Shown: positions 1,331 to 29,475, counted from the first letter of the stretch. The stretch: DNA of 64,000 nt from Thalia democratica (GCA_965202585.1 OZ241828.1:25668001-25732000); one strand, 5' to 3'. Notes: generated from the letters alone by a model not told the origin. Translations and numbers: made by a program.

Positions 1331-1430
1331 GTACTTTAGTATTTATTTTTCAACCCCGTACGTTTGAAAAGGTTGAAGGCCACCTAAGCTGGCCTAAACA
1401 ACAAACAATTTTGATTACAAAATAATTAAC

Positions 1431-1680
1431 CTGATTGGTGCTTTGTAGCTAACGACTTATTATATGATTTTTCCCACTTTGCATTCTTGATACACAGAAA
1501 AAAATCATTTAAACACTAAGGTTGGTTAGTATAACTTTCAACAAGTAATTTTCAAATTGTGATTGGTGCTGTGTAGCTAATGACTTATTTCTGATTTTTC
1601 CCACCTACTTCCGTGATATCAAAAAAAAAATATTTTAAATATCAAAGTTGATTAGTATAACTTTCAACAGTTATTCTTAT
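1431..1680 (+). repeat. tandem duplication, unit about 128 bp
   Basis: tgattggtgctKtgtagctaaYgacttatt...ttagtataactttcaaca twice. Confidence 0.85.
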
Positions 1681-3741: not shown

Positions 3742-5820
3742 TTATGACGTCATAAAATTTACCTCTTTCTCCTGGTTAGTCATGCCGTCGTTTTCAAGCA
3801 CCTCGCTTGCCACATTCACTGTGAACTCCAGCTGCGAGATGATGTCGTCCACGTAAATGAAGTCTTTTTTCTTTCTCCTTTCAAAACTGGAAGACTGGGA
3901 CATTTGCCCGTTGTAGTTGTTTTCCATTTCTTCTGCTTTTCCTTGAGAGCCGTCGTTTATTTCAACTTCATTTGCCTCGCCCTGAGAGACAGTGTCTGAT
4001 GCCCCGTCTTGGAACTTAACTTCTTCGGCCTCGATTTCTTTCATCACTTTTTCCACTTGCGCCATCTGTTCTGCAGTGACCCCATGTTCACCTTTGCGCA
4101 CGTGTTTCTTCTTCTCCCGACCAATGTCAGCTTTACTTTCAGTCATGCCAATGCACACTTCTTTGGGTGCTGTTTCCTGCGCATTGTTTTCTTCAACGGT
4201 TTCTTGTTTCACTACAGTTGCGTCTGCAGAACATTCTTTGCTTTCAGCATCAACTTGAGCTGTATCGTTATTTTCTACTTCATCTTGTGAGACTTTAACT
4301 GCATCGTCTGTAACTTCGACTTTGTTTTCTTCGGCCAGGCATTTTTCTTCGGCCTCGATTTCTTTCATCACTTCTTCCACTTGCGCCATCTGTTCCGCGG
4401 TCACCCCGTGGTGCTCGCCGTTGAGCACGTGCTTCTTCCTCTCCCGGCCAATGTCGGCTTCGCTCTCAGTCATGCCGATGCAAACCGTGCTCTCAACAAA
4501 CTTGACTTTAGAGTCGAATATCGACTGCTTCAGCGTGGAAGCCAGGTTGCCCGCTTCGGTGCTCTGAACAATGGTGGCGTCTGAGTCGACGAGGAGATTA
4601 GATTTCTTGTCCTGATCGTCTTCAACTACCGACTCTACCAGCAGTTTGGACTCTGCATTCAAACTCTCGTGGACTTCTACCACAGGGGAGCTTACTGACG
4701 AGCTGCCGGCTTTGTTGTTTTCCGCAAAGTCTGAGAGGCTTGATTCCAGAACTATTTGCTCGCTTGCTGCCTTTACTGCGTCCACTGCAAGAGCTTCCGG
4801 TTCGGTTTCGGTCTTTTCCTCCAAGCTGTCCGTTTCGACTTTAGTTTCGTCTTCCACTGAGCTTTCAGAAGAGATTTGGATTTCCGGAGTTGCAACTTCT
4901 TCATTGGTTTCAGGAGCAACATCGTTGTTCTCAACAGCTTCGGTAACAGGTTCTTTTTCCTCTACGGCCTCAGTTGTAACCTCATTTTCTTCAGGAACTT
5001 CAGGAGCTTCTTTTACTTCATCGCAAGTTTCGTCAACTGTTTCATCTGCTGGCGCAACAAGGCTTTCCACCGTCACGTCGGCAGGAACCTCTTGGTTATC
5101 AACGGCTTCGGGGCTGACCACAACCTGCACGGGTGACTCTCGAGCATCAGCAGCTTTATCATCAGATACTTCTGTGGTTTCAGAGGAGGCTTCGTTCACT
5201 TTGTCGGAAGATGATTCAGCAGCGTCGTCAGTTGAAACTTCATCCACATTCTCCTTGATCTCGGCATCAAAGTTCTCCAACACCTCGTTGACCTCTTCTG
5301 ATTGGTCGTTGGTGATCGTGACGTCACTGTTCACGCTCGACCGATCGCCGCTCGACGGCGTCGGAACTTCCATTGTGACGTCACCGCAGACGGTCGACGC
5401 GACCTCCGACTCGGCTACCACGACGTCATCATTTACGCCCTCAGATTGTGGAGCGTCTCCTTCCTTTGGACAGTTTCCGTTCGTCTCTACGATTATGACG
5501 TCACCGTCGTCAACTTTCTCCTCGACCTGAGGGGAGTTTTCCCCCTTGTTGTTGCCGAGGGTGACCTCGGAAGGAGAGGTGATTACGATCCTGGGAGGTT
5601 CGAGGTTGTTTCCCTCTTTGTTTTCTCCTTTCTTGCTCCCCTGCTTCTTCTTCTTTTTGCTCCCCTTGAAAGATCCCCTTTTGACCGACCTGAACCCTTT
5701 CAGAAGCCCCTTCTTTTTCGGTTTTTCCCCTTGAGCGGGGTAGGCCTCCCCGTTTTCGATCGCGGGGCTTTCCTGGGGTTTCACCTCCTTTTTACTCTCA
5801 GATGAAGATTTGTTTCCCAT
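3742..5820 (-). CDS. 692-aa acidic, likely disordered protein with MGNKSS myristoylation motif and polybasic segment (MARCKS/AKAP12-like architecture); may instead be a giant exon ending at the donor after 3763
   Basis: Long GC-richer ORF; ATG in aaaATGG context at 5820; strong acceptor ctttttacAG 37 nt upstream (exon start 5857); KKKGLLKGFRSVKRGSFKGSKKKKK; E/D/V/S-rich body; GAG|gtaaat donor 7 codons before the stop; AATAAA about 130 nt after the stop. Confidence 0.88.
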   Translation of the reverse strand: MGNKSSSESKKEVKPQESPAIENGEAYPAQGEKPKKKGLLKGFRSVKRGSFKGSKKKKKQGSKKGENKEGNNLEPPRIVITSPSEVTLGNNKGENSPQVEEKVDDGDVIIVETNGNCPKEGDAPQSEGVNDDVVVAESEVASTVCGDVTMEVPTPSSGDRSSVNSDVTITNDQSEEVNEVLENFDAEIKENVDEVSTDDAAESSSDKVNEASSETTEVSDDKAADARESPVQVVVSPEAVDNQEVPADVTVESLVAPADETVDETCDEVKEAPEVPEENEVTTEAVEEKEPVTEAVENNDVAPETNEEVATPEIQISSESSVEDETKVETDSLEEKTETEPEALAVDAVKAASEQIVLESSLSDFAENNKAGSSSVSSPVVEVHESLNAESKLLVESVVEDDQDKKSNLLVDSDATIVQSTEAGNLASTLKQSIFDSKVKFVESTVCIGMTESEADIGRERKKHVLNGEHHGVTAEQMAQVEEVMKEIEAEEKCLAEENKVEVTDDAVKVSQDEVENNDTAQVDAESKECSADATVVKQETVEENNAQETAPKEVCIGMTESKADIGREKKKHVRKGEHGVTAEQMAQVEKVMKEIEAEEVKFQDGASDTVSQGEANEVEINDGSQGKAEEMENNYNGQMSQSSSFERRKKKDFIYVDDIISQLEFTVNVASEVLENDGMTNQEKEVNFMTS

Positions 5821-7894
5821 TTTTGTGATTTTAATAAAACAACTAATTAATAATAAACTGTAAAAAGGTTTACAGTAAATATGAATTCTTTGATAATTTT
5901 TAAAATACAATATAAGCTTAACTAACCAAAGTAGCTTAGGGCACGAATTAATCGATAAGTAGATCAATTGATCAAAACAAGAGTCTTGTAGGCAAGCTGC
6001 CAAAACAACTCACTGAACAGATTACAAGGATATATGATCATTTAATAAAACAAACAAGTTAATCTAATAACAAGTGATAGTTTATAATTAGCTTGGCTGG
6101 GATACCAAATTACAAAAAGAAACAAACAAGTTGGTGTAGTAACAAACTTAACAAGTGTACGATTGTTGACTTGGCAGCATTCGAACAAAGTAAGACTTTT
6201 AATTAAATGCACAAGTCATAAAAGCACTGTGGTTGAGTTACAACAATACTTGTTTAAACAAAGCGAGCATTCAGCTTAATTAATGCCATGAGAGCTGGTC
6301 TTGAACAACAATTGTCAAGTTAGTTATCTCATCTTAAGTTAGAGTTAATTTACTAAGTCATGTTCAAATTGTATGAACATATAAAAACTCTTATTCAACA
6401 AAAACCATCCTAGCTAAACTTAAATGTAAAGTTAGCACTCAATGACGTTTTAATGGAATATAAGTCTAATTTCGTACACAAAGCTTTAAACAATCATCTT
6501 CAATTTACTTAGTTAGTTTATCATATACTTTTATAAATATAACAACATGTAAAAACTGTCAAAGTATGAAATTCCAAAAACAGTTTATTAAAACTTCCTA
6601 TCAACAAAATTATTATATCAATATAAAGTACAAGCTAGTGTTGTCCAAAATTTATTAACGGTTTAAAATTTTCAAGCCGCTTTTAAAACAATAAAACAAG
6701 TTCTGTACACTTAATCTCTATCAATCTATGTAAAAATCTCATATTGTGTGTATATATTTAAAAACTCAATTGCAACATAGTATATGTGGTTTCCGCTCCG
6801 TTTCACTACACAAAAAAGCTCATTTATTTCAATAATGAAAACCCAAACCGCTCAAACTTCCTCGGTTAACCGAAAACTTTCAGCCTTTTTTATTGTCTTA
6901 TCTGCCTAATCTTTTTTTTGCTCTACTGTCGTGTATTCCGAAAATAACTTTTTGAAGCGAGCAGTGTTTAAGCGTATCGATTTATGAGGCGCATATACGT
7001 GAGTGCGTGTATATTGAAACAATTAAAACTTTTGCTGTGTCTAGCTCGGATCACAGCTTGTATGTTAAAGTAATTTTACGCAGTGAGTCTTACGTGAACA
7101 AAGAGCATTAAATGCAAATTGAAGTACTATTTTTTGTCAATTACGCATGAAAATATTCTTTTTTTGTCATAATATAGGTAGTTTTTGTTCCACTTACGTA
7201 AAAATGTTTCTAAAGTATAACAAAAACAAAATCAATAAAGTTTAGCATACTTTTTAGTTATTGTTTAACCTCGCTTTGTACTGTAAAACAGTAAACCTTA
7301 TCGTATTGCTTCAAAAAAAAAACAACAACTAAATACATAAAAATTCTAATTTTTTAGCTTTTATTAAACTTTAGCAGCAACTAAAGGTTGCCTTAAACAA
7401 GTAACATTTACAAACGCTGATGATAAAATCAAGCCCTGAGAGAATGACCTTTAACAAGATATAATTCACTTTGAAAATATCATTGCAGTTAACTTTCAAA
7501 ACCTAACTTTTACCCAGTTTGATATGTGTTTATTATTTATTCATGGCTAAACAAGTACTGTCCTCGCATATTCCAAGTAAATAAATGTCAAAGTTTTTTT
7601 TTAACTTCTAAAATCAATATTTTATACTCCTTAGTAACGTAAAACCACAAATAAACAATAGTTTATTTTTTCTTTATCAAAAACTTTTGTTTACGGTTTT
7701 AAATCTAACCTACAAGCTAAAATCTATAATCTAACAATGAAAATAAAAACTATTTTCTTTAAAAATAACACTTTATTTAAGCGAATAATTTTCCAGTCGG
7801 CTTAAAGTTATTACCCTGTCTGCACATTCAACATAAAATTTATTCGATGTCCTCAAGGAAAATAATCGTGTTGCCGGCTGAAGTTAAGACTTAC

Positions 7895-8050
7895 TCTAGT
7901 GACGTCATAATGAAAAGTACCGCGTGACGTCATAATAAGGGAAGACAATGAAGTTCGAGGCTTGTTTGTTGGGGCGCAGCAGCTTTTTGCTACCGCTGCT
8001 GCGAAAACACTTGTTGCCGTTCAAGTTGTGATAAGGGATAGTGGAAAGAA
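7895..8050 (-). promoter_or_regulatory. promoter-like island/candidate non-coding exon with paired TGACGTCA sites and a 9-bp hairpin
   Basis: TGACGTCA at 7900 and 7925; IR cgcagcagc/gctgctgcg at 7975-8003; AGA|gtaagt donor at 7894. Confidence 0.4.
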
Positions 8051-9602
8051 AAATTCATTTGTTGTTTGGTGGTTATTCTTAAGGAAAATGTGAGCCAGCT
8101 GTCAAAACTCTTACTTATCGGTTTTAATGAAGTTTTTTAATGAACTAGTTAGTAAAATTTTCACATTATCTTTAGTTATTATTACATAGATTTGTACACT
8201 AAAACAAAAACTATATTACTTGTAAAAGTTGTAGCTTATTACTTACAAAAATCATTAAAGAGCTAGTTTGTAAGTGTTTCACATGATCTTTAAGTGGTTT
8301 TAACCTGGTTTGTATTGCAAAAAGTTGAGTAAGAACTTTATCACGTATATGAACTTGGGATAACAAGCTGCTATTCGAGTTTCTATTGCAAGTTTGCTAT
8401 AAAAAATTTTACTTTTAAGAATGTTTAAGTGTTGTCGGCTGTCATAACTATAACACATTCAAAAACTTCTAAAAATTCTCAATAAAGATAATTAACAACT
8501 TGTTTCAGTTCATAACCTTAAATTTTATAGTTCTAGAGTTGTAGTAATTATGTCTTTACAACTTTTCATAACATATGTACAACTCCAATCACAGGTTTAC
8601 ATTATAAAATTTTCCATTGTCATTAGTGTTGTTACTTTTTAAAATATAATTTAAAGACGAAACAAAGGCTAGTAAGTAAATATGTACAATGTTGTATTTG
8701 AAACATAGTACTTGAATAAAACAAGTTAAGCAATAAAGCTTTCATCGTAACGTCAATAAAAAGTATATTAAAGCTGTCAAAACTGAACTTAAAAGTGGCA
8801 ATTAAACATTGAACCGTGAAAAAAAGGGTCGTTAGTTTAAGTGATTAGTGGTCAGTTTTTTGCTAGTTTAAAAATTGCTGTAAAATTTTTGTTTTAAAGT
8901 TTAGAAGGTTTTAAAATTCATAAGAAAATTCAAATATGTCAATAAAAAATGCGAACAGCTGCTATGTAATTTTTCATTCTAAAATATAAATTTCACGTGT
9001 GAAATAAATAACCTAACTAGTCATAAAAAACTAGAACGCAGTAAAATTTTATGAGAATAATGTCTTCAGTTACAGTATTTCGTTCATAAAAGAAAGCTGC
9101 GATATAAGTGTCATGTTTTAAGAAAATATAAAATTATAACTAATATTTATTGTAGAAATATAAACCAGACACTAGAATTTTTATCTCTTTACACTTCTGT
9201 TTTTAATTTTTAAAAGGTTTTATAAATAAAAACTAATCTGACTAAAACAAAACTTCAAATAAGTCTGTGAGTTTTTTATTAAAAATGTGACTACCTAAAG
9301 TACAAAACTAACAGTAAGACAAACTTAAAAAACACAATAGATCATTGTTACTTCTAATTATATATTTTGCTAAAGGTTTTCTGAGACTTAAACAAAAACA
9401 TTAGAAACTTTCTACATTAAAGTTACCAAACAGCCATAAACAAACTAGTACTTGTGAACGTGACTCTAACTTGCCGAAATTAAATTAATTTAAAATAATC
9501 TTTCTTTATATACTTTATTTTACATTATATAAATTAAATTTAGAAATATAATGTAAAAAAACTATAATAAAACTAGCTGACACAAAGCTTTCAAACAGTT
9601 AC

Positions 9603-9676
9603 CTAGACAAATTAATACTTGTGAACGAGAATCTTGCCAAACTAGCTCTCTCAACTATCTCGCGCCTTCCTCGCAT
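9603..9676 (-). CDS. candidate upstream exon MRGRREIVERASLARFSFTSINLS (phase 2), in frame with the 5857 acceptor
   Basis: GC-rich island after two TGACGTCA sites; TAG|gtaact donor with an echo copy at about 9421-9480; phase matches the giant exon. Confidence 0.3.
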
Positions 9677-9694
9677 GATTCCCAGCTTGTCTTG

Positions 9695-9727
9695 TGACGT
9701 CACAGTTAGAAGTGCGCTATGACGTCA
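9695..9727. promoter_or_regulatory. paired CRE-type palindromes, 25 bp apart
   Basis: TGACGTCA at 9695-9702 and 9720-9727; same 25-bp spacing as the 7900/7925 pair. Confidence 0.5.
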
Positions 9728-12700
9728 CAATGCGAAAATAACCGCGAAATGATTAAACTATGTCTTGTCTGCTGTCTGAAGAATCTGTTCTTTTATTATC
9801 TCATGATTCAGTTGTTTTTATTTGTTGTGTTTTTGAAAAAAAGTTGTTATGATTAATTTAAATTAAAGATTTTTTAATTGATTGCAAAGCATCTTCAAGA
9901 TCTTTGTTTTTATTAATCTAGCAAAATATCAAATAAAAATAACAGAATGTTCAAAATTTTGTGAAATTGTGTTTGAACGACACATGCAAAATTAATTATG
10001 TTTTTTGTGAGCATATGTTTATTTTTTCTTAACAAAAAATGCTTTTTTTTTTTTTAAACTTTAATTATTTTTTGATGGCAAATTAATTACAAACGTTTTG
10101 TGCAATCTTTAATAGTTCTCATTGTTTTATTCAAAAAAGATTGCACGTAAATCGATTAACAGTTAGATATAACCATGTTTTAAACTTTCATTTGAGCTTC
10201 TTAACAGTAAAATTTAAAAAAAAAACCTTTAATAGGTTGAAATTTTCTTTATGAATGTCAGTTAATAGTATTCTAATTAAAAAAGACTAACACTGATATT
10301 TGTTTAATTAGTTTAATTAAACAACAAAGTAAATCAATATAGTAGCTTTTTTTAGGTTAACTAGTAGGGTCAACAAATAATTACATAACTTTGTTGCATT
10401 TGTTTAAATATATAAAGCAAACGAGTTTACGACACAAGTTCAATTAAAAGTAGCCAAAAGTAAAAGCTTATGTCAGTTACAAAACACAAAGCTTGTATAT
10501 ATATTTTTAAACTAAATAAAACTAAAACATATAAGGAAGCTATGCAGTAATTTTTGACCCTGTAATTTAGCTAAGTAATGGCTGTGTGTTTTTATTAAAT
10601 CAAACAGAAATTTTGTTATTGAACTGTTTTTTTTTCTGCTTTGTATAGTTTTACTACAAAACACTTCACACACTTCAAATTTAAACATTCAAAGTTTTAA
10701 TAAAAAAAATTATACTACTCACATATGAAACAAACTTAGTACAACTTTAGGCATTCACAAAAAGACCTAAAAATAGCGTTTAGCATTTAACAAACAATTA
10801 CATGGACTACTTCATTGTAGTGCAACCATTTAGAATAATAACTGACCACACACGCAACATAAAACTTATTGAAAGTTACTTGAGCACAACTTTTCTACGA
10901 AAACTTTGGTGACAACTGTGATAAAGTAAAGAGAAAAGCGAAGAGTTTAGAAAGATTATTTTTTCCCAAAATATGGAAGTATCTTGTTAACTTTTCAAGT
11001 ATTTTCACGGTTTATAAGTGATCATTGTCATAAAAGGAAAAAAGTTCATTCAAAACAAGCTTCTTCGAAGTAATTTTTTAGCTGAGCTATTTAAAGTATT
11101 TGTTTAAAATAGTTAGTGTAATTAAAAAGAAGAAGTTTATAACTAAAAAATTTGTATTTTGTTATTTGACCTCTTTTGAATCTCAAAGCATTATTTTTTG
11201 CTTACCTAGATTATTTATTTTTGATACAACCGCATAAAGTTAAATGAAGACTAATATGCTTTCTTTAAATTTCTACTCAGCATTAAGATGTTTCAAATGA
11301 CCTATTTTATCTTCAACCTAATTTGCATACTAAATTTTAATTCACATTTCATTTAAAACCAATCTCGCTAAACACCAGGCCTGTTTATGACTCTAACAAA
11401 AAACAAAAATAAAGTCTAGAAACGTTTAACAGAAGGCCTGAAACAATTTTGTTTTAATATAGCATATTACGAAAATTTAAATCTAAACAGTGGTTACATA
11501 TTAGTTTTTGAAGATACTTTCATACCAATTTGGCTAAAAAAATTGTATCTAAATAATATACACAAGCAAATGTTACTTTGAAAAGATAACATCATATAAA
11601 ATATGCATTAAGCCAAAGATATTGATCAATATGTTTTATAATATGCACATTAAAATTACTACATTTGATAATGAATTTCTTAATTAATAATATCAGACCT
11701 CTATAAAATTTTGTACCCTAAAGTAAATTTTTTGCATATAACGAAAAAAGCTTTGCAGAAAAGTCATTTCAATAACTAATTCAAACGCAAAACCACATGA
11801 AAATACATGACACAAAATCATTAGTCTGATGGTGGCCAGGTCATCTTGGCAACAAGCTCATTGTGTTGCAACTTGATTAATTATTCAGATATTTTGATAG
11901 ATTTTACATGAAATTTGTTGTGTGCGGTGAAAGTTTATCGATTTGGTTTTTGTTGATTTTTGTAAAGTTTGTCCGTCATAACTAATTCATTTAAATTTTG
12001 TTAAGTTTGTAATTTTGTTTTTTTATTTTTATAAACTGTGAAGTTTTTGGCTGAAATTGGACTGCATACATTAAACAACTGTTGTAATACTAACTTTATT
12101 GTTTTTTAATGTATTATACTTTATCGCTGACTGGTTTCTTTAAGATACTTAAGTTATTTTACTACAAGTGTACAAAAAATGCTAACAAAGAGATATTTTT
12201 AATAAAGTTTAAAGTCTTAAGTTATAAATAAGATAGTTAAGTAATAAGTAGATGTGTTTTTGAACTTTTAATTTATTTTGGTATAAGCTTGTTATAAAAC
12301 TTTTTATTCATTAAGTAAAGGTGTAGTTTTTATTTTCATAAACTTATAAGAACTTATCATAGTTTTGTTTAAAACAGATTATAAATATATCATTTTACAT
12401 AGAGTAATGTTTATGTTAATACTTTTACTTAACACAATGGTTCTAGCCATTGTTTAAACAAACATAAAAAATTAAAATTTTTAAAACAAAAGTACTATAC
12501 ACATTCATAAAAATAAAATATTTTAAAATATAATACATATCTGTCACTTGTATTATTTTTTACCAACGTAACACTAGAGTATTATATTGTATACACAAGC
12601 GGTTTGCCGTGAATAGAAAGAAAATGTTTTAAAATAACAAAGCTGTAGATGGCCATTGTAATTTTTGGTAATTTCTGTTTACATTAAAATTTAAAACTTA

Positions 12701-14230
12701 TATCTCTACTTACATCAGTATTAGGGCTGAAGCTACTCTAATAATCAATCTATTCTCTAACAACTCATTTTTTATAGTTAGTACCAAATTAGAACAAAAG
12801 TATACTTTTATAAGCTGTAATAAAATACTAAAAACATTTTAGAACATTTATTTTTTAATTTTATTGTCAAGCAAAATACACCCATTAACTCATTATCTTA
12901 CAGAACTAATAAAAAGGTGAAACAAAAAAGAATGTTTATAGTAAATTATTTTCTTATAAGTATTCAAGTAAGTTATAGGCCTAGTTTCAAACAATACACC
13001 ATAATTTCATTTTAAACAAAATAACATTAGAAAATAATTCAATTTTTTCAAAATTATATCTCAAATTACATCAAGTTTGTGGTAAAAGTTTTGTTGTAGC
13101 CTAAGTTTTTTTCCCATAACGAAAAAAAGCTTCTTTTTTTAGTTTTCGACAAACCACAGTCAAATATTACATGGAAATAAAATCTGAATACAGCTTAATA
13201 TTAATTTACTTGTAAGTATTTTTAAATTAATATTGACAATTTAAAACTCTTAAAGAATATATCAGCAAAATTCTAGTTAATCTTTAAGAAACAAAAACAG
13301 TTAAACATGCTCAGTTAAACAACTTCAAAAAATAACAACACAGAAACATTTCTGCTTTATTAAACTTAACTTTCAAAATAAAAACTATACAAAGCTTTCA
13401 GCTTTTAATCTTTATAAACTAACAGTCTAAATCTTTTGTTTTTCTTATATAGTATTGTTTTTGTGTTCAGTATAAACACAGTGTTTTAATCATTATGCAA
13501 CTTTAGTAGAGCACATATTTAAACTGACGCAAGTTTGAAAAAGTATTATCTAACTAACTTCAAAGAAAAGATTGCATGTTTCAAATATCATTGTGATTAA
13601 TTTGTGTTTAAAATTTAAACTATAACCTATAAGCTGGTTATATTCAACTGTTGCAAGGCTTTAACACAAACTAATTGTTTTATAGCTAATTAGCAATTTT
13701 TAAAAAAGCTTATTCTGCTAATTTGTGTAAAACTGTAAAGTGTGAAATTAACAAAATTTCTGCAAACTCAAAAAGCTAAGATTGTATAATCCCAAGTTTA
13801 TTTTTATTAAGTTGGCATACCAAATATAGTAAATAAAACACTAGAAACTTTTTGACTTAAGAAATCATAAACTTAGTGTTTTTAATATTTTGATTTTTTA
13901 ATTAAACAACATAGTTTTAAAATAAATTTTTATAAACTGAAACTTAAGTTTTATAAAAATAAACGAAACTGTTTTAATAAACCTTATATAAACTTGTTTC
14001 ATAAAGCTAACAAATTACCAAGACTTATTTTTTCAATTTTCTTTTAAAACTCAAAATATAACTCTTTTAGTACAAAATGTTTTTAAATGCATTACAACTA
14101 ACTTTAATAACTTTTCTATTTAACAAATCTAATTTACAACTACCTATTTTTCAACAAAAAGATCCACTATAAAATTTTACCAGTTTAAAACTAAAAAATG
14201 AGACAAACGAAAGAGTCGTCTCACTCTTAC

Positions 14231-14345
14231 GCGTTCGTTTCAAACTAAAAAAAAATATTGCAGCGCGCACCAATTTTTTACAAACTTTTTTCCTTTTCCA
14301 CCGCGCGCTTTTTTCTTGTTATTACAACTTTTCATACTGAAACGT
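14231..14345 (-). promoter_or_regulatory. candidate non-coding first exon
   Basis: Initiator-like TCAGT near 14338, two gcgcgc words, GC|gtaaga donor at 14230. Confidence 0.3.
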
Positions 14346-15275
14346 AAAACCTCGAGTCTTGGGTTACGGAACAAAAGAAAAAGCAAGTCGCTTCAAGTGT
14401 GTTTGTAAATAAATGTTTTTTTTTTTGGTGAACGCTTTTAAAATGTTATTTTTCTTTTGATATTTTCCCTCATTTTGACAGGATGCAATTTTTAAACAAG
14501 TTGTAAAAAAACTGGCATTTTTTAAATGTATTTTTGGTATTGAGTTTTTTTGGAAGGCTTGTTTCGACTAACTTTTGACTATCTATTTTAAATTGACATT
14601 GACTTTTGCACATTTTCCTTTTTTATAAAGTTTCATTTTTAAACAAGGTCAAACTTTATTTTTGGCATAAAAGATATAAATAATCTTGACATTCGATTAT
14701 TTTAATTATTGCCAGAAAAAGCTTTTATTTAATAAAAAATACTAAACTTGAGCATAGTAACTTCTGGAAACTTAACAAGGTTAAAAAAGTTTTCAAAACA
14801 TAAAAACAACTACTGTTTGAAATTATATATAGTTTTTTATACACTTGGAAGACTTAAAGTTTCTCATAAAGACAAAAAGTCACAAAAAAGCTATTGTATC
14901 TAAAATAATTTTTGGTGGTAAAAAACTGAAAAGTAATTTTATTTAACAAGATTTTGATATTAAACAAATATTTCAGTTTTATTCAATGTTTCAAACGAAA
15001 TTAAATAAAGTAAAATTTTTGACTAAACTAAATATTTTTTAAAACAAAAGCTTAGTTTATAAGTACTCCAGTAAATACATAAATATAACTTAAAATAGTT
15101 TTTTGCCAATTATTTTTGTACATTTATATGTTTAGATAAAATAAGGATACGACAAATATTTTAATCAAACGGAATATTTAACTTAAAGTTATGCAATATT
15201 TAAGCAAGCACTTTTTGTAACGAAATTAGTAAGTTATACAACGCTTCCAAAACTTTGATGTACTTTGAAGCGTTG

Positions 15276-15515
15276 TTAACTTTAAAGTACAAGTTATATG
15301 ACAAGTTTTTTTCTTTTGGCCTTTTCGTAGCTTAACTTTTGAGTTTTAACAAATAACTGAAATAGTTAATAAGCAAGTATTTATAGAAAAGTTTATAGAG
15401 TCTAAAGACTTGCACTTTGTTTAATAAGTTTAAATCACAAAGGAAGTAACTAAAAGTAAAATGACAAGTTATTCTTCCTTGGCTTTTCAGGGGCTTAACT
15501 TTTAAGATTTTTACA
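15276..15515 (+). repeat. degenerate tandem duplication, unit about 170 bp
   Basis: atgacaagtt..tct..ttggc.ttt..g..gcttaactttt twice. Confidence 0.7.
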
Positions 15516-18500: not shown

Positions 18501-21500
18501 CAAATGTCATTTAGATATTCATATAAACCACGTATGAAATGCATTTGTTTTAGATTAACCTTAAGCTTGAAGAACACACATCTACCGCAGTAATCTCAAA
18601 AACATTTAAGCAATATAAAGTAGCTTAATTCCTTACAGCTATAGACATAACATACTAACAAAAGTTTTTGAATAAGTTTGCTTTTCAAGATGCATTATTA
18701 TTAAATTTTAAATAGTATTGACTTTAATTAGTTTGGGTTTTAATTTAATAAAAATTTAAAGTCACATGTTGTTTAGTTAAAAGATAGAATAAAACACTTC
18801 AAGTTAATATAACTTCGAGTACTTAGAATAAAACTAATTTAAGAAAATGTATATATAACTGCTTAAAATAAAATCTTCAATTAAAGCAGGATAAAATGCT
18901 TAAACAATTTAGTAAACAAAACTAAAACGTAACGAAAAAGCAAATACCGTACGCTCTCAATTTTCTTTGGAAATAACAAAAACAAATTAATCCTAACAAC
19001 AAACAAATATTACTCAAACAGGCCACTTACACAAAAAGGTCCCTCTTTTACGAAAAAAAAAACGCAGGTTAAAAGGAAAGCTTTTCAAGTGAGCTATAAA
19101 TAGAACGTGTATCGATTTTTCACTTTTCCTTTGTAAAATCACGTCTGAATTGCAAATTAGCTGCGGTTTATCTGATTTTCCAATGCGAAAATTAACCTAG
19201 CTGATTCTTTAGTATAATAACGTTTTGAAATTTTGTAATTTTTATTACGTTTTTCTACTAAACCTTTACTTACAACAAGTTAGGTTTTTTATTTGTAGCT
19301 GTTTTAGACTCTTTGAATGCTGATACTTTGGTCTATACGCGATTAGACTTGATAGATTAAGTGAAAAAAATTGTATGTTAAGTGAGTGATTTGAAATTCT
19401 AACCAACTGCGGTCAAAAGACATATTTTCCTGAACTTAATTCGAAAGTTCTTCAGTCAATTTGATTTAATTTTGTCAAAGCATGGATAAAAGTTTTACTT
19501 TAGTAGAAATTAAGGTCAGATGTTTATAATAGCAAACTTTTAGTAATCCAAAGATAACGTTTTGTGTGTTGTAAGTAAACTTCGTTAAAGTATTAAAAAG
19601 TTTTAAATTTTTAAAATTAGAACTATAAAGTTTTGAAAATCAATCACGTTTATTTTTTATTTTAAATTTTTTTTATGCTAAATTTTGTTTCATTTTAAAC
19701 TAGGATAAAGTAAACAAATTTGATTAAAATGCTCTTATACTTTGTATATATAAAAGCTTCATTTTACTCATTAGTCATCTACTAATAACACAATTTTTAA
19801 CATGAATAAAACAAAGTGTATACTCAATTTTTTTACGATTAAAGTACTAAACATTTCAAAAAAAAGATAACAAATTCAGTATTTTGATATTACTCAAATC
19901 AATAAAGTTTACTGTTTTATAACTTTAAACTAAACACTTCAAAGAAATACTTTTGAAACCACTAAAACTCATTAGGAACATATGGTGGAATATTTTGTAA
20001 ACTAATTAGTCAACTTTATCAAGGAAAAATAAAATTTTCGATCAATAAACTTGAATGTTTCAAATCATGAGCAAATTCTAAACGAGCGACAACAATTATA
20101 ATTCAATCAAGCCCGTATGTTGGGCTAATTTGTAGGTTAATAATTTAATTTAAACTCATGAACAAATAGATTTGCAGCGATATTTAAGAGTGAGTTAAAG
20201 TGAACTGTAGTACTATTAAATAAAACACATATTCATGGTTTAATAAAGACAATTTAAAGCATAAATGATCTTAAAATGTCATAATATAGAATAAATCCTA
20301 TAAAAAATTTTATGTTTTGTAGTATACTTTGAAAAAAAAAAGTTTATAAAAAAGTTTTTTTCATATTAAAATACTACTACTTAACCTATACTTTAAGATA
20401 TTGCTTATAAAAAAATATCAAGAACAAAAGTATAACAAGAGCAAAAATAATGATTGCTCATTAATATCCTATGCTTGGTAGATTTTAAGTTGAATCAGAC
20501 ATATTAATCACAATATTTTTATCTACCTAAATCACATAAAAATAAATCAAAAAATAAATAAAAGTTTTGATAAAAATAAAAGCCCTGGTGTATTAGATAA
20601 AGCATGGTGAATATAGACATAAAAAATTACTTTAATTTACTGTTTTTTTCATTAACCTTTGTCTAAAACTAACTTGATAAAAAAACAAATAAATATTAGT
20701 GTTTTATAAGTAATCCATTTTGTTTTCAATTATCATATGTTGTTAAAGACTAACAACATTTAAATTTTAAAAAAGACAACAAGCAAAAAAGACTTGAGAT
20801 ATTTTTCACTAATTTAGAACAAACAAACTATTTTAAATTTGTAAAGTATTACGTTCTAATAAAAACATATTGGTAAATAACTAATGTATTCGCTACATAT
20901 GGATGAATTTACAAGTTAACAAGTAATCTATCTCTAAAAAAAACACAAAAAAACGAGTCTTTTTTTTTATCCTTAGTTTATTTCATCCATAATTAATTTT
21001 GCGTTTCTTTGACGTAGGTAACAAATGACATTCAAATAAGTAAATCCTTTATAACAAAATAAAAAAAGCAATGTAATTGAAATCAATAAAACAAACTTTA
21101 ATAGTCAAATCATAGTTGTATATTAAGTATTAGGAAAATGTTTATTGATTTAAAGAAACAGCATGATAATTTTCAGCTATAATACTAATGTGATTCTGAA
21201 AACAGTAAAATGGGAATATTTTATGTTTCATCAATAATTTACGTTCCAATGTGCACATATGCGCGTGCTATGACGTATATTCGAAATATCATTTTAATGA
21301 CTCAACCTCAAAAAGCTTTTGTTCTTTCATTAAGACGAATTGATGCATTGTGACTAACAATAACGTTTTGTTTTATTTGCTTAAACTTGAAAGCATTAGC
21401 TTATTAGGAAATTGTCTCTTGGGGGATTAAAAAAGTCTGTTAATTTATTTTAATCATTATATTCTCTGTGATGAATTAAAATATTTTCCTATTGTTTTGA

Positions 21501-22155
21501 GTTTATGATGGGTCTAAATCAATTTATGTTCTTCTTAGTTTATACAATAAGTTTTTCAAGACACACAATTTCAAAAAAGCTAGATATATTTCGAGCATAA
21601 CCGTTTGATTTAAAACTAACATAACTAAAGAACAAAATGCTCAAGTAATAACGAAATTACTTAAATCTGTTTGCTTCTAGCAAAATTAATAGACTTTTAC
21701 AGTTTTTTTTTTAGTATACGAATTATCATATGAAGCTTAACACGCGCTTTGTACTTTTTCGACTGAGGAAAAAAGCAGAAGTAGAATAAGTAAGTTCATA
21801 TTTTAAATTATTTATAAGCCGTAGTAGAAAATCGCTTTGAAAAAGCCACAAGTTTTGAATTTATGCCTAGGTTTCAGTTTAGCATCAGCTTTTAACAGTT
21901 GCTTTAGCGGCTTTTCATCTCACTACAACTGAGCGTACAAAAGTAATAAAAACTTGTTTTCAAAGCTTAAATAAATCATTAGCAATAATGAGAACCAGTT
22001 TATAAAATAACTTGGTGTCTTTAACCGGTAACAAAGGTACTTTAAACTTTTTGAAAATGTTCTATGTAACTAAAATTGGTTCTTTTTAATCAAATTATCA
22101 AAGCTAGGAACAAAAAAATTAAAACAGTAAGTTTATATATTTAGTAATTCATAAA

Positions 22156-22720
22156 GCCGTACTACAAAACCGCGCACAAAAAAAAAACTTTAATTTCCAC
22201 CAGTTTCATTTCAAACTTCACCGCTGCATTTAGCTATACTAAAATTCATAAGATTATTTAATTTTTTAAACTAGTAACAATACAAACAAAATATATATAT
22301 CAAATATTTCATACTACAAAACCAATATCAAAAGCAACAGTTTACAGTACCATTTCAAGTTTGACTATTACTTTTAATTTTATTAAAGTTTATTTGTTTA
22401 TTGAAATTTTTCAATCTACCAATAAATACACAACAAAAATAATAAGTTTATATATTAAACATTTTATACTACAAAACAACTATCAAAACAAAAATTTTAT
22501 TTATTTTTCGTCATTTAAATTTTAATCATTACTTTTAGTCAAACGAAAATAAAGTAAAGTGGATACAAAAGTACATAATAAAAATTATAACAAAATAAAA
22601 CTAAAACTACAAAAAAAAAATATTTAACATTCGTATATTCTACAACAAAACTAGTAGTAACTTTTGTTTCAAACAGTATCATTTCAATTTTGACCATTAC
22701 TTTTAGTTTTTATTGATTAA
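22156..22720 (+). repeat. degenerate tandem array, 4 units of about 160 bp
   Basis: Repeated tactacaaaac..., catttcaa.tttgac.attactttta blocks. Confidence 0.7.
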
Positions 22721-23824
22721 GGCCATCTGGTACACAGAGAAACTAGTTTCCTTTTGTCTGCTTGACTTGTACTTTTGTTTGACATACAAGCTACTTTCGT
22801 GTTTTCTTTACTAAAAACTTACCTTGGACGAAAATCTCATGTTGTTTTTATATGAAATAATGGATTGAAAGAAGTATTGACAGCTTAGTAAATACAATGT
22901 GTTCCATTATGGAACGTAGATAAATCTATAAGTTGTGTTTTTGTAATGATAAGTATTACAACAAAAAATATTAGTAATAGATATGTAACATAAATAAAAT
23001 GTTGTTATAACTAGTTTTATCAAAATAAAAAAGTCTTTTCTAACAAATTAACGCATTTTCAGTAAAAATACAATGCACTTTAAATATGTTTTCATTCGAG
23101 TAGTATTGTTATACTTTTTTATTAACTAACTTGACAAAAATAAGTTATCTAATAATAAAAAAAGCAATTTTTTGTGTAAACAATCAAAGTCTTTGTTAAA
23201 ATTAAATTTAGAGTTCATACTACAAACCAAACAAAGAATAAACCATAAAGCGACAAACTTCATTTAAAAATACCTACTTTTAGCGTATTATAAGCCCTTA
23301 CAAAGACTTTAAAAAGAAAAAACTACATAATAAAAAGTTATAAAACTATAAGCTTACAAACACTAACAATAAAATTAGAGCTGACAAACTCAACAATGAA
23401 ACTTTCATTTTGTACATACATATCAACATTAAACTACAAAAGCAAAAGTATAAAAACATACAAACAAAAGTACATGTACTTGCAAATGTAAACACCAGTA
23501 AAAGTAATTATCTAAATAATAGAACAAATTATATTTAAAATTTAAACAAACAAAAACTGCTACAAATTAATACCTGATGCAACATATAAACATCTACAAC
23601 AACATTTTTGCTTCAATATTAAAACTTCTGCTGTCTAAACACACTTAACAAAAGTACAAGTGGCACTTGTACACTTCTAAACAAACTTTTCTCTCTATAT
23701 ATCTACATTCACACATTCACAAATGAATGATAACAAAAACCGGAATCTTGCAAAGTGTAAAAACTTCAATCAAAAGAGAAGCGATGTACCAAAAAAAAAA
23801 AGCGAGAAAAAAAGAAAAAGTCAC

Positions 23825-23956
23825 CTCACAAATTCCAAGCTTCTCATTGGTCCATTTTCCAGGGTCCACACTTGACTCCTGACTATCAAGGTTCCTGAAC
23901 AAGTAATCAGGAAAGTTTCTGTCGGGGTGACGGGTCCTGGTCGAGATGTTTCCCAT
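23825..23956 (-). CDS. ATG-initiated 44-codon exon MGNISTRTRHPDRNFPDYLFRNLDSQESSVDPGKWTNEKLGICE, probable alternative first coding exon
   Basis: GC rises abruptly at the ATG (gtcATGG), third codon positions are GC-rich in this frame, and GC drops at a GAG|gtgact phase-0 donor followed by T-rich sequence. Confidence 0.6.
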
Positions 23957-26149
23957 GACAACGTTGTTGTGGTGACGCAATAGCAAAAAAGAATTGTTGC
24001 TAAGCAAATCGTGATAGATGGAAGAGAAGTTTTGAATGAAGTAGTAATTACTATGATGTCATAAGCAGTCTTGTGTATGACCTTCGAAATCGATAAATAT
24101 ATATATATATATGCATACTTGCGAATATACTGACTGTACTGCAATAATGGAAGCGCATATCAAAGTCTGTAGTCTTTTCAGACTGATTTAGACAAATTAC
24201 TTTGCTATGAACATTTTAAAGCTCGAACTTTTTTTTTAAACAAAAGTTGTGAAGTAGTATAAAAAATGTCATTTAAGTATATATATGAAGTAGTAAAGTA
24301 TTTATACTTTTATAATATTTCTACGTTTACTCTGTATTTAACAAAAGTTTGAGGATTTCGTATAAAAATTTTTTTAAACTTGTCAAGCTTAAAATCCAAA
24401 ATGTATTTTGATTAGTTTTCTGAAGTCATATGTATATAATAAAGGTAAATATAAAAATCTGAGTGTTTACATGCCGATAAAGTCAGTGTTTTAACACAGA
24501 TTTATACAGATGACTTTATACTTTCGAACTATCAACTAAAACTTGAACTTTCGATATTTCTAAGCTATTTTCATTTAAATAGCAGTTTTGCATATTGCTT
24601 TTGAAGTGTCCTTATGTGTTGTACTCTACTGAGTAATTATAAAAAACATAGTGTCGATATTTCCACTATAAATTGTTTATATACTGTCAGTTTCAATTTG
24701 AGCTTTACATACTCAAAAACTATTCTTGCAAACAAATCTGACCTAAAAATTTCATTTAGTCTACTTGAATATATTTACTTATACACTATACTTGGCAAAC
24801 CTGGCACAAAATAAAATCAATACACGTTTGTTAGAGGTGTCAGTGTTTTCACACTTAACTTAACAACGTTTTACGCATGAACTGCTTGAACTTTTCAACT
24901 TTGCAAATTGAATCGCTACGTCATTATGTGTATCCTGTTCTTGTTAGCTAGCTGCATGGCGTTTAAAAAACTCTTTGTTGTTTTTACGCAAATAAACTTA
25001 CCAACTGAGCTGTACCTTATGAACACATTTACTTTGTAGTAGTTAAACTCATAACTTGAACTATAGTTGTTTCTGATTGGAACTTTTCCGTTTTTTCAAT
25101 TTTTTAATTCTTAAGTATTATTTGTTTACATGTTTATCTTGATAAAAATGTTTAGCTAGTTATTTAAAAATTGCTAAAAGGTTAAAAATTTTACGTGTTG
25201 ATAGTATTTTGTTTGTACAATAGATAAGAAAGTTTCATAGTTAATCTTTAACATGTTATAATCGGTTCAACTACTCACGAACAACCTTTAATAGCCAATT
25301 TTGTTAGAAAATCGCAAAAAAATCACTTTGAATTAAAAATGCTTTGAGTTTCTACATAAACAATTTTTTTGAGTGTATAGCTTTATTTATCTATAGTAAT
25401 TGTAAACTCATTCTTTACTGATTGTATCTTTTTGTTAGTTATGATAAAGCTGTTTGATAACAAATTAAAATGTTTTCAAAGCTTTTGTGGAGCACGATTT
25501 TTTTTCGACAAAGCCTTAAATGTTTGCATTTGATAAAGTTTATTTACAAAATTTTATCAACATTTTCATCACGTTTTTACCAAAAGCTGCAAATAAGCTG
25601 GGTTTATAACACAACATTGAAGAAAATAATGTTTTATCAAAAAGATCATTCTAAAGCTTATCAATTTTTTTTTAAGCGAGTAAAAGTTTAATAAAACTCA
25701 TTACCTTAGTATAACTAAACAAAGCAACAAAAAAGCATAACCCCAAATTAAATTCACATCATAAAAGATAAAATAGAACCGCAAAGCTATAAACATCAAA
25801 TAAAACAAAAAAGTAAATGAAAAATAAACCAACAGGCTGACCGTAAGAGTTGTAAATGGTCAAGAAGAAAATTTCTGAAAAAAAAGTAATCAGATTAATA
25901 AGAATTATTTATTCTACGCTATTCATACTTAGTACTTACTTGTTCTACTTTTTGTACAAATATAGTGATACATTTTGCGTGTATACCTAAGAGGGTTCAA
26001 TCTAAGTGAGCAGAATTTTTCAACTAAACTTTACTACAAAGCGTTTAAAAGTTATTGACTAGCTTTGGCACGACTTCAAAAGCTGCTAAAGTCTAGCGAA
26101 GTTTAGCCGATTTAAAAGTGCAATATTGAAGTTTTACGTTAAAAAGAGA

Positions 26150-27100
26150 GCATGTAGGTACGAAACACCAACGTAAAAAGTGCTGGATCGTAAAGCGCGT
26201 GAAATTTCCTTATAAAATATTGATGAAGTTTTGAATATAATCTATAAATAGCATGAGTGCGTACGCCGTTGTATAACTATAAAAGGTATGCTGTAGACTT
26301 TTTACAGATTGTATTTTAAAAAATAAACTATAGACTTTTATTAAATATTTATTGAAAGACGTGTCTACTAAACGTAAACGGATTTGAAACAGATTTTGCT
26401 GCTTTAAACTTCTATAGTGTAGTAAATAGTACAATCTACATAAAAGAGAAGAGTTATACCTGTACTCACTGCTTAACTCTGATATGTAAATTAGTAAAAC
26501 TTTTTTGTTGTTTTTAGTCGTTATCAAAAATAGTAACACCGTTTATAATATGTCGCCAACATTAAGAGATTTCAATAAAACACTATTTTGAAAGTTTAGT
26601 GACGTATTGAATGTTTCACAGCGTAAGTTCTTGCTCATTAAATATTGTTAAATACTTCCAAAAACTATCAGTTACATGGAGTAAAGGTAAATTGCATGAT
26701 AGTTTATGCCGTTGTATAAGTCTTAAAGGTATGCTATAGACTTTTATACACTATTTATAAAATATATACTGTAGACTTTTATGAAATATTAATTACATGG
26801 CACGTCTTCAAGAGTAAAAGCTTTTGTAAAACGGTTTATTACAGCATTATATGTACACAATGAAGTAATAGACATATATTTCACATAAAACAGTGTTACC
26901 TTTAATTTGCATGTGGCTTTTTTACATAAGTCGGTGATACTCTGGTATTGCTTTTAGTTATCTATCAAAATAAAACTTTATATTCTTCCGCCAACAAATG
27001 GGGATTAAATAAAACGCTACTTTGGAAGTTTAATGGCACTGTATGAATATTTTAGAACGTAAACGGCATGAAATTTTTATTATCAAATATTGATGAAAAT
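26150..27100 (+). repeat. degenerate tandem duplication, unit about 440-500 bp
   Basis: gccgttgtataa....aaaggtatgctRtagactttt and cgccaaca....aataaaacRcta blocks each twice. Confidence 0.7.
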
Positions 27101-27197
27101 ATTATTGCTAAAATAAGCTGGGAAACTTTGGTATTGTAGACTGATGATCTCCTAAATACAGTCTTTTTTGGTGAGAGTTTTTTTTGGTGAACTAATA

Positions 27198-28481
27198 CAG
27201 GGTTCGTGCGCGAAATTTTTTTCATTTAGCCTGACTGAGACCAATTTAGCCTGACATTTTTTCAAAGTAAGAAAAATCCCCTTTAGAAGTCATTTTAGGT
27301 ATTGGGGGTCTTGATTAGTATTATTGTAGTCTCTAACTTCAACCAGCTTTATCTCAAAAATATTTTAAGCTTAAAAAACTGCAAAAAGCAACTCATAGCC
27401 TAGTTACAACTCAATAAAATAAGACTAAATTGTGAAAAAGGTGATTGACCTCCCTATGACCTTAACATAACAAATTCAGTGATAAGTTTTAAAATAAGTG
27501 TTATATCTAATCTATTACTAGTGTAAAAATTCAGTGTATTTTACTAAACACAATTTTTCAATTTAATTAAGCACTAAGTAAAAACATTATAACCAGAAGA
27601 TTTATAATAAAACAACGTGCATTGTGGTGTTTTAATAAAATTTAAAATAAAACGGATACACGAGTGTTAAAGTAAGTAAAAAATGTTTATAATAGTATTT
27701 TGACTAATAGTTATAATTGATACATAATTATAAATCCTAAACTCTAAATTAATACAGTGATTGTTGATGTCGTATCAAATTTAAAAAGGTTACACTTAAG
27801 TTAAAAAAAACCTTTAATATTTTGTTCTTGTAAAGAAAAATGATTTATACCTAAAACTTGTACTCCCACAAAACTTAGTACTTATGTCTTAAAGCTAAGT
27901 TTTAGTGTTGTGAATATCTCTAATAACTTTAAATAAACAGTAAAATATATATGAATAAACTGCTAAGAGTTTTAATCTAAAAAGTGTTTGGTATAAAGCC
28001 TTTAAATTAGAAATTAAAACAGTTCAACCAACTAAGCTCTGAAAAACATAGCTGATGTAAACAAATTCAAACAAACAGTTAAGTTGTTGAACTAAGCTGT
28101 AATGTTTAAACTGTTTTTTTTTTTTTTTGGAATTTTCATAACTATGATGTATATAATCTACTCAAAACAAAATAATGAAAATTCTTATTAATTTAAAGAG
28201 ATTCAACAAAAGGTTTTAAGCATTTATTTTTACAAATACTGACTGATTTTGTCTTTGATAACTAAATCTTTATTTAGAAATAAATTCACATCTCAATTTA
28301 ATCTTAAAAAGATTTCTCAACTTTTTTCAATCAAAATTTTTCAAGCATTTGAACTGAGAAAAACTGAGATTTTCAAATTTTTAAATAAAAAAACTGATTT
28401 AGCCTGACGTTTTTCAACTTTTTTCAAAAAAACTTATTTAGCCTGACTTAGCCTGATTTAGCCTGACGCGCACGAACCCTG
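27198..28481. mobile_element. non-autonomous TA-flanked DNA transposon (Tc1/mariner-type), 1284 bp
   Basis: 15-bp TIR cagggttcgtgcgcg / cgcgcacgaaccctg flanked by TA on both sides; subterminal ttagcctga(c) repeats at both ends; no transposase ORF. Confidence 0.85.
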
Positions 28482-29035
28482 TAAAAACAAAAGCATATTT
28501 AAAAAGCAGTAAAGTTTTTAAAATGTTACTCATAGAAAAACAAAATTTGAAATTTCACAAACCTTATAAAGGTATTTCCTCGGTAGCATTAAATTAAATG
28601 TTTACAAAAAAAAATAATTGAATTAACGAATTTTACTGAGTATGGTAACATTTACAGAAGGTGTCTTTGGTTTACCAAATTAAATAAACAAAAAAAATTG
28701 TATAAATTGCAAAACATCACGAGTTAATGTTTTTTTTTGCGGTGTACCTTCAGATAAGCTTCAAAAAGGATAATAAAGTTTAGATAAATTGTTTTCGAAA
28801 AAATTTTCAATATATATTTTCTTTTTTTTATTCTTATTTTTTTCTTTTCTTTCTTCTTGGTCCAATCAGCTCAGGTTTTGAAGCATCCAAAACCAAAGTA
28901 CAATAAACACGATAAGTATTAATTGTTCACAAACTCAAGAAATTTTTTTTGCAACACGAAGATAGAAAAAATAAAATTCAAAATTAAATAAAGTACAGTA
29001 ATTTAAATTTATAGTACAACAAAACATCAACAAAC

Positions 29036-29166
29036 CTTGTTGTCTTGAAGTTTCTTCGCATCCGGTGATTCCCCTTCAGCAGTGACGTCATAACCCCGGC
29101 AAACGACAAACGTGACGTCACTCTTCACCCCCCTCAAAACGTTGACCGCTTCCCTGTGGCTTAGTC
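29036..29166 (-). CDS. scrib: scribble exon T: PDZ4 end (GLSHREAVNVLRGVKSDVTFVVCRGYDVTAEGESPDAKKLQDNK)
   Basis: tgtcAG / GTttgt, phase 1->0; last scribble exon recognisable in the window. Confidence 0.92.
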
Positions 29167-29390
29167 CTGACATTTAACAATAGATTGTTGGTTTGTTATG
29201 TATTTGTTATACAAATTAGTGTATGTTGTAACATAAACAATAAAAACATCAAAAAAAAAATTAATAAAAAAAATAAATTTTGGGTTTTAAATTAAATGCA
29301 GAGTTATATATATTAATTCAAATCAATATTAAGTTTTTCATTCATAAACTTATACTAGTATAACAGTTATTATTGTTCTTAAAAGCTCAC

Positions 29391-29475
29391 CCAATAATGA
29401 TTTGTTGTCAACTTCCAAGATTCGGTTTCCAACTTTTAATTGTTGCGACTTGTACGCAGCCCCTTCCGGTTTCAA
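29391..29475 (-). CDS. scrib: scribble exon S: PDZ4 middle (LKPEGAAYKSQQLKVGNRILEVDNKSLL)
   Basis: gtacAG / GTgagc, phase 0->1. Confidence 0.93.

Follow-up and report, generated by a model that had tools for sequence, protein, structure and literature searches.

Several genes are known to switch the membrane anchor of their products through alternative first exons: PSD-95/DLG has a palmitoylated alpha form and a beta form with L27, and AKAP12 has a myristoylated alpha form besides its beta and gamma forms. MARCKS, MARCKS-like, BASP1 and GAP43 represent the myristoyl-electrostatic switch type, and PKM-zeta from PRKCZ is an internal-start product that keeps the catalytic domain. Here we describe a Scribble locus of the tunicate Thalia democratica, contained in a stretch of 64,000 nucleotides (GCA_965202585.1 OZ241828.1:25668001-25732000; this whole stretch is called the window hereafter), in which the exon encoding the end of the fourth PDZ domain (PDZ4), called exon T, is followed by 29 kb holding two exons that start with Met-Gly-Asn (MGN), a giant coding exon and a short candidate one (the MGNIST exon). 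The splice donors of exon T and of the giant exon are both used and the exon downstream of them is common, the junction of the giant exon having been found in a close relative; the giant exon is expressed, and its N-terminal module is conserved. We consider it likely that a very long Scribble intron of this locus contains an alternative first coding exon that is expressed and whose donor is joined to the tail exon also used by exon T, and that two protein classes with a common tail are produced.

The tail following PDZ4 in vertebrate SCRIB contains three SADH motifs and a Shroom-binding WRAAR box (PMC4350421, PMC10626209). The SADH motif, Y-[KR]-x-[FL]-A-A-[ILV]-P, binds spectrin, is present in vertebrate SCRIB, ABLIM and dematin/DMTN, and has been published as vertebrate-specific, tunicates not being among the species tested (PMC4350421); the WRAAR box, 29 amino acids long, has been reported in all metazoan SCRIB (PMC10626209). 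For Drosophila scrib, 18 alternative transcripts are known, and their variety concerns the alternative exon 24, which carries the WRAAR motif (PMC10626209). In mouse and human, a large proportion of the disease mutations fall in the Scribble tail, which has been studied only as an appendage of the scaffold formed by the leucine-rich repeats (LRRs) and PDZ domains (PMC4350421, PMC10626209). The literature searched contained no description of a Scribble isoform that is myristoylated or consists of the tail only.

Splicing of exon T and the giant exon to a shared tail exon

The sequence of the window is also present in marine metagenomes and metatranscriptomes, and the following sequencing runs have been mapped over positions 23600-29599: X2 (RNA from this organism), X1 (an independent marine metatranscriptome), and X4 and X5 (DNA). 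X2 was assigned to RNA because unique non-coding DNA has zero depth in this run and introns are passed over by its contigs, and X4 and X5 were assigned to DNA because they cover everything; variants found in the two DNA runs represent the other haplotype of this organism and a sister species, B.

Both X2 and X1 cover exon T and the exon preceding it. Contigs of the two runs cease to match the window exactly at 29036 and continue off-window for 24 (X2) and 28 (X1) letters, which read on in frame as PAEENDVS and PVEDNDVSV, respectively. At its other end, past 29475, the X2 contig reads SKDMGIFISN, which is the end of the preceding PDZ4 exon, and it therefore represents a correctly spliced Scribble mRNA. 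Unspliced read-through from exon T would add just VC and then a stop (..NKVC*), and this mode of termination was ruled out by the zero RNA depth over 28600-28999 in both runs. The possibility raised in an earlier note on this DNA, that Scribble transcripts end near 28800, is thus answered: the donor of exon T is spliced onward, and the next exon of Scribble lies beyond the window, more than 29 kb away. The same note had stated that C-terminal Scribble exons are lacking in the 29 kb after PDZ4, and three kinds of search of the window confirmed this: tail fragments had no tblastn match, the 24-nucleotide junction sequence had no match with up to three mismatches allowed, and no WRAAR-like or SADH-like motif was present in the six frames.

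The giant exon is expressed in this organism, since X2 holds 95% of its sampled words, as compared with 10% for the mostly intronic stretch 28300-29500. When the giant exon was searched with HMMER exhaustively against 1.84 billion proteins, only three relatives were found. Metatranscriptome fragments matching the exon are P0002, P0003 and P0004. P0002, which comes from the Tara metatranscriptomes (MERC), agrees with the final 47 residues of the giant exon at every position and then passes from MTNQEKE into PAEDNDVSIVSQQDD; P0004, which was found by extending along the tail from P0002, has the same junction. Both fragments read VLENDGMTNQEKE followed by PAEDNDVSI, and this is the exon that follows exon T. 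A shared exon is thus seen from both sides: exon T leads to PAEENDVS in X2 and to PVEDNDVSV in X1, and the giant exon leads to PAEDNDVSI in P0002 and P0004, that is, in the close relative only. The earlier note had proposed that exon T, the MGNIST exon and the giant exon could all join one downstream exon; this holds for exon T and the giant exon, while the MGNIST exon has no RNA in X2 or X1.

The way in which the contigs end may also reflect this sharing. The X2 contig extends more than 255 nucleotides upstream through Scribble exons, yet halts 24 nucleotides into the next exon, and the X1 contig halts at 28 nucleotides, both values being under the assembler's k of 31. Such halts would match a branch point of the de Bruijn graph if the exon has more than one upstream partner.

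Alternative splicing also affects the tail itself. Fragments P0005, P0006 and P0007 read EKE followed by ELDEKLAKAEKE, skipping the PAEDNDVS exon, which therefore behaves as a cassette (PAEDNDVS...DTDQ; compare P0004 with P0005 and P0006). In P0007, PSRASQ is followed by the divergent EEPVTHVSAIKISII, which has the look of a retained intron or of a further exon.

The giant exon, its 5′ end and the MGNIST exon

The giant exon has the MGN start and the phase-0 donor that had been noted before; its end had been placed at 3742, which is the end of the read-through open reading frame (ORF), and the exon ends at 3763. A predicted N-myristoylation signal and an adjacent polybasic cluster are found at its N-terminus, and the MGN starts of both the giant and MGNIST exons fit the PROSITE pattern G-{EDRKHPFYW}-x(2)-[STAGCN]-{P}. 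Net charge is +12 over residues 1-75 and -106 over the remainder. The N-terminal module is conserved in P0001, which comes from a GC-rich and more distant relative (Tara metagenome contigs L001-L003): identity over the module is 51%, with MGNK, a basic Ser/Phe cluster and then 17 consecutive identical residues, LEPPRIVITSPSEVTLG. The exon of this relative likewise has an acidic body and a phase-0 donor.

In the remainder of the giant exon, conservation is uneven. The acidic middle is only about 53% identical in P0003, as compared with the last 47 residues, which contain a predicted helix (DFIYV...ASEV). Two copies of a unit of about 47 residues lie further upstream as direct repeats (4021-4158 and 4345-4485; 82-92% DNA identity), and each of them is predicted as an isolated helix with a predicted local distance difference test (pLDDT) value of about 80 in an otherwise disordered model. 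In a single-sequence AlphaFold model of the last 243 residues, most of the chain is disordered (pLDDT 51) with isolated helices. The contrast between the conserved helices, i.e., the two repeat units and the last 47 residues, and the middle suggests that the helices are binding sites. No usable family was found for the giant exon in Pfam, PDB sequences or the ESM Atlas; nothing passed in Pfam, where the sole match was Aida_N at an E-value of 0.059. The motif of RII-binding helices is [AVLISE]xx[AVLIF][AVLI]xx[AVLI][AVLIF]xx[AVLISE]; an AKAP-type helix of this kind was sought by regular expression in the 686-residue exon and gave no match, and the conserved helix DFIYVDDIISQLEFTVNVASEV merely resembles the motif.

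Concerning the 5′ end of the giant exon, a splice acceptor lies near the ATG in both species (37 nucleotides ahead of it in the window; in the distant relative, a pyrimidine-rich acceptor 56 nucleotides ahead), and this would imply a spliced leader of some kind. The promoter-like islands mentioned in the earlier note do exist as far as sequence features can call them, and two of them, A and B, are paralogous. Each has a pair of TGACGTCA sites (cAMP response element, CRE) 25 nucleotides apart, and an alignment puts the CRE pairs and the distal donors of the two islands in register. We slightly favor an origin of the giant exon's 5′ end from these paired-CRE islands, with a non-coding leader that would be spliced to the acceptor. 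Nearly as likely, though remaining the less probable choice, is that the tail-only product arises without an internal promoter, by trans-splicing of a spliced leader (SL) to the acceptor in an outron or in the long pre-mRNA of Scribble. The choice of isoform would then be a splicing decision and not a transcriptional one, and no internal promoter would strictly be required. The good acceptor sequence ttttacAG in the window, the acceptor of the distant relative, and the fact that SL trans-splicing is established in tunicates (PMC1488885) all speak for such a route. Islands A and B, however, stand 4 and 2 kb upstream in the right orientation with paired CREs and GT donors, and have the appearance of promoters whose non-coding first exons would be spliced in cis to this acceptor.

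The palindrome TGACGTCA itself occurs 16 times in the window, as compared with 0.37 expected from shuffles, and its sites include 3745, 5319, 5376, 5496, 7900, 7925, 9695, 9720, 29083, 29113, 46133 and 46152. Some copies are part of coding exons and are translated as D-V-T or D-D-V, and others form pairs with 25-nucleotide spacing in non-coding islands; the junction of the off-window tail exon also contains it. At 789-1417, in the intron downstream of the giant exon, there is an island of low complexity that is rich in CG, with runs of cgcgcgcg and several copies of ttttttgcg; it has no coding frame on either strand and may be a repeat element or a further regulatory island.

The two MGN-starting exons with phase-0 donors had been described in the earlier note, and their sequences were confirmed. 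Probably, the candidate MGNIST exon is a second first exon like the giant exon that is used rarely or in a tissue-specific manner. It shares with the giant exon the MGN start and a phase-0 donor, and its GC content reaches 52% against a background of about 25%, as is found in the real exons here. Among the variants listed from X4 and X5, the four in this exon are all synonymous third-position changes, and this hints at a real coding exon used selectively. The other possibility, a tenable but less favored one, is that the exon is a chance ORF with a GT after it and that the giant exon is the sole alternative first coding exon of this locus; the zero RNA depth over 23800-23999 in both X2 and X1 is in agreement with this.

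The Scribble gene, its tail and other gene models

GC content is about 26% across this AT-rich window, and exons are visible as GC islands. Features discussed in the text are listed in the table below.

Table. Features of the Thalia democratica window and the exon to its left; a slash within a sequence or a pair of adjacent positions marks the splice site.
Feature	Position	Strand	Details
Scribble gene	beyond 64000 down to ~29000	minus	GC islands, ORFs and PDZ matches
Preceding PDZ4 exon	32888-33043	minus	ends SKDMGIFISN
Scribble PDZ4 middle exon	29391..29475	minus	RNA coverage in X2 and X1
Exon T, last PDZ4 exon	29166-29036	minus	phase-0 donor AAG/gtttgt at 29036/29035, preceded by CAA GAC AAC AAG
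MGNIST exon, candidate second alternative first exon	23956-23825	minus	ATG at 23956; 44 residues; phase-0 donor GAG/gtgact at 23825
Island A, promoter/leader-like	9603..9727	minus	two TGACGTCA sites (9720 and 9695); donor AG/gtaact at 9603/9602
Island B, promoter/leader-like, paralogue of A	7815..7932	minus	two TGACGTCA sites (7925 and 7900); donors gtaagt at 7895/7894 and gtaata at 7815/7814
Acceptor ttttacAG and 37-nucleotide leader	5821..5859	minus	AG at 5859-5858, upstream of the giant exon ATG
Giant exon, alternative first coding exon	5820-3763	minus	ATG at 5820; 686 residues; phase-0 donor GAG/gtaaat at 3763/3762
N-terminal module	5596..5820	minus	MGNKSSS; polybasic Ser/Phe cluster (KKKGLLKGFRSVKRGSFKGSKKKKK); LEPPRIVITSPSEVTLG
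Two copies of ~47-residue unit	4021..4485	minus	VCIGMTES.ADIGRE.KKHV..GEH.GVTAEQMAQVE.VMKEIEAEE
Conserved last 47 residues of giant exon	3763..3903	minus	MSQSSSFERRKKKDFIYVDDIISQLEFTVNVASEVLENDGMTNQEKE; 100% identical in P0002 and P0004
First 3.7 kb of intron between giant exon and shared tail exon	1..3762	minus	no tail-fragment or junction match
Shared tail exon	off-window, left of position 1	minus	exon following exon T; begins CCCGCCGAGGAAAATGACGTCAGC

Four PDZ domains were found in the Scribble ORFs, each divided among two or three exons, and most of the LRR exons are beyond the right end of the window; the LRR exon near 62000 (61926-62174) gave only weak, sub-threshold Pfam matches to LRR_8 and LRR_14 (E-values 0.002-0.008). 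Pfam PDZ matches were obtained for the first exons of PDZ1 and PDZ2. In phmmer searches of PDB sequences, the PDZ1 exon matched many human and fly Scribble PDZ1 chains at E-values of about 1e-16, the top matches being DLG4 tandem PDZ, and the exon T peptide had its best matches in human Scribble PDZ3-4 and PDZ4 (4wyt, 1uju), at the end of PDZ4. Judged by Pfam, phmmer and the list of ORFs, the PDZ domains resemble Scribble PDZ1-4 most. Upstream Scribble introns, as estimated from GC islands and ORFs, range from about 0.13 to 4.5 kb; the average of 1.6 kb given earlier was roughly borne out, the measured mean being slightly larger, near 2 kb. The intron on the 3′ side of exon T exceeds 29 kb. 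It contains, at 27200-28600, a very high-copy repeat (DNA word depth of about 2-6 x 10^5 as compared with about 100 for unique sequence), copies of which are present in both RNA runs and which has many internal rearranged joints in DNA contigs. At 25600-26400, faint RNA depth of 0.6-3.3 was found in X2 only, in an otherwise silent intron. No Rfam match was found within positions 1-30000.

About 200 residues of the tail are known, from the close relative. They are acidic and disordered and have no usable family in Pfam, PDB or the ESM Atlas; a Paralemmin match on P0004 was set aside, since its 23.5 bits are under the cut-off of 27.3 and it lies in E/K-rich sequence. The tail contains VKPLTYKQLSATP and ends in KLGIGYKDFAAA, its last letters reading GIGYKDFAAA. 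Within these, YKDFAA agrees with the SADH core Y-[KR]-x-[FL]-A-A and occupies residues 192-198 of P0005 and P0006, at the fragment end; a core of this type arises in only 1.25e-4 of tail shuffles, and a relaxed copy, YKQLSATP, is present at residues 104-112 of the same two fragments. The WRAAR box is absent from the six frames of the window and from the approximately 200 residues recovered. A word search with residues 110-198 of P0005, made for extending the tail, gave P0005 alone, the members of its cluster stop at the same residue, and two Joint Genome Institute (JGI) metagenome scans found nothing. From the junction with exon T and the SADH core taken together, Scribble tail is the best reading of the shared tail.

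Several points weigh against the gene model that we favor, in which one Scribble gene has two kinds of first coding exon. The junction of the giant exon with the tail was observed in a close relative (91% identity over the overlap and 100% over the last 47 residues) and not in this organism, and the MGNIST exon is silent in both RNA runs. The tail, at about 200 residues, is too short to reach the pan-metazoan WRAAR box, and the SADH match is short and is cut by the fragment end, the [ILV]-P part being beyond the fragment with A at the expected [ILV]. Myristoylation rests on a permissive sequence pattern. In addition, rare variants are lost from Logan contigs, so that a minor form, for example one in which exon T is spliced to the 5857 acceptor, could escape.

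A doubtful extension of the same findings is that the tunicate locus preserves a stage in the making of the Scribble tail of chordates. In this view, the tail would have started as the main part of another gene, which encoded a myristoylated acidic cortical protein and was located downstream of a Scribble gene that ended with PDZ4. Scribble would have captured it, through splicing over the intergenic region, in the ancestor shared by tunicates and vertebrates; the MGN exons would be the original starts, still in use. If true, this would explain why SADH is found only in this lineage and how the tail can function without LRRs and PDZ domains.

Somewhat more doubtful still is the view that the MGN exons and the tail exons form a separate downstream gene at present, encoding an acidic, myristoylated cortical protein, with Scribble ending after PDZ4 and the join of exon T to the tail being only a conjoined or read-through transcript. 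Several findings would suit such a gene: no homology to named families is detectable for the giant exon or for the known tail, the WRAAR box is not seen in the approximately 200 residues, the intron after exon T, at more than 29 kb, exceeds the longest other Scribble intron in the window more than sixfold, and SADH motifs occur outside Scribble too, in ABLIM and dematin (PMC4350421). In two independent RNA data sets, however, the tail exon is the only continuation from exon T; there is no coverage after exon T that could serve as a 3′ untranslated region, and a tail-less Scribble has no observed stop or 3′ end. Vertebrate SCRIB, moreover, has SADH motifs in exactly that position, after PDZ4. 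The alternative offered in the earlier note, first exons of a separate downstream gene, is accordingly disfavored by the joining of exon T and the giant exon to the same exon.

It is very improbable that the giant exon serves as a cassette within an oversized Scribble isoform, with translation entering it from PDZ4. About 61 in-frame codons upstream of its ATG (5821-6003, minus strand) are free of stops in DNA of 26% GC, for which a rough estimate gives a chance of about 0.5%, but they encode hydrophobic AT-rich noise. The one good acceptor (5858) does not keep the frame set by the phase-0 donor of exon T, and their join would read TTT ATT ATT AAT TAG, with a stop following four codons; the AG sites that would keep the frame, at 5934 and 5916, are poor in their pyrimidine tracts. 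In X2 and X1, exon T is spliced straight to the tail exon, and contig L002 of the distant relative has an in-frame TAA three codons before the conserved MGNK. The acceptor phase in the window and the upstream stop in the relative thus rule out an in-frame internal exon and make the giant exon a first coding exon.

Two probable protein classes and known systems

Under the favored model of one Scribble gene with an alternative first coding exon, the interval would be the first 29 kb of the Scribble intron between exon T and the first C-terminal tail exon. One class of product would be canonical Scribble with LRRs, four PDZ domains and the tail. The other class would have neither LRRs nor PDZ domains, and would consist of a Met-Gly myristoylation signal, a polybasic Ser/Phe cluster, about 600 residues of acidic disorder with three conserved helices, and the tail. 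Myristate and the basic cluster may hold this tail-only form at the plasma membrane by a myristoyl-electrostatic switch in the style of MARCKS, so that a lipid and basic anchor would take over the part that the LRRs play in bringing full-length Scribble to the membrane. The tail has SADH-type motifs, which may bind spectrin, and the tail-only form could engage the cortical partners of the tail, or compete for them, independently of PDZ ligands.

If this is true, a natural isoform with the tail on an anchor of its own would show that the Scribble tail is an autonomous cortical module, and the isoform would be a built-in competitor or partner of full-length Scribble. The presence of SADH-like motifs in a tunicate tail would place the origin of the motif earlier, in the ancestor that tunicates share with vertebrates. 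The locus is also a caution in annotating genomes: the 29-kb "gap" after PDZ4 is to be taken as an intron with alternative first exons and not as the end of the gene.

The tail resembles that of vertebrate SCRIB in being disordered, in following PDZ4 and in having short linear motifs, represented in the tunicate fragments by YKDFAA and the looser YKQLSATP; for the vertebrate tail, no start of its own has been described in the literature searched, and the tunicate fragments end too soon for a WRAAR box to be seen. The transcript variety of Drosophila scrib concerns exon 24 with its WRAAR motif. PKM-zeta is similar in having an internal start in a large gene and a product without the N-terminal regulatory and targeting domains; here, in contrast, only the motif-bearing tail would be retained and a new N-terminal targeting module added.

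Likeness to the MARCKS type is found in the N-terminal Met-Gly, the basic cluster rich in Lys, Ser and Phe, and the long acidic disordered remainder. There is no sequence homology (no Pfam MARCKS match), however, the basic cluster is near the N-terminus and not in the middle of the protein, and the chain continues into the Scribble tail; the giant exon would therefore work like the MARCKS family without being a member of it. With PSD-95/DLG and AKAP12, the locus shares the use of alternative 5′ exons of one gene, one of which gives a lipid anchor to a shared body. Here, the alternative exon replaces all of the folded domains (16 LRRs and four PDZ domains) and adds 686 residues, and only a disordered tail is common to the two classes. 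The locus would thus represent an alternative-first-exon membrane-anchor switch, which for Scribble is previously undescribed in the literature searched.

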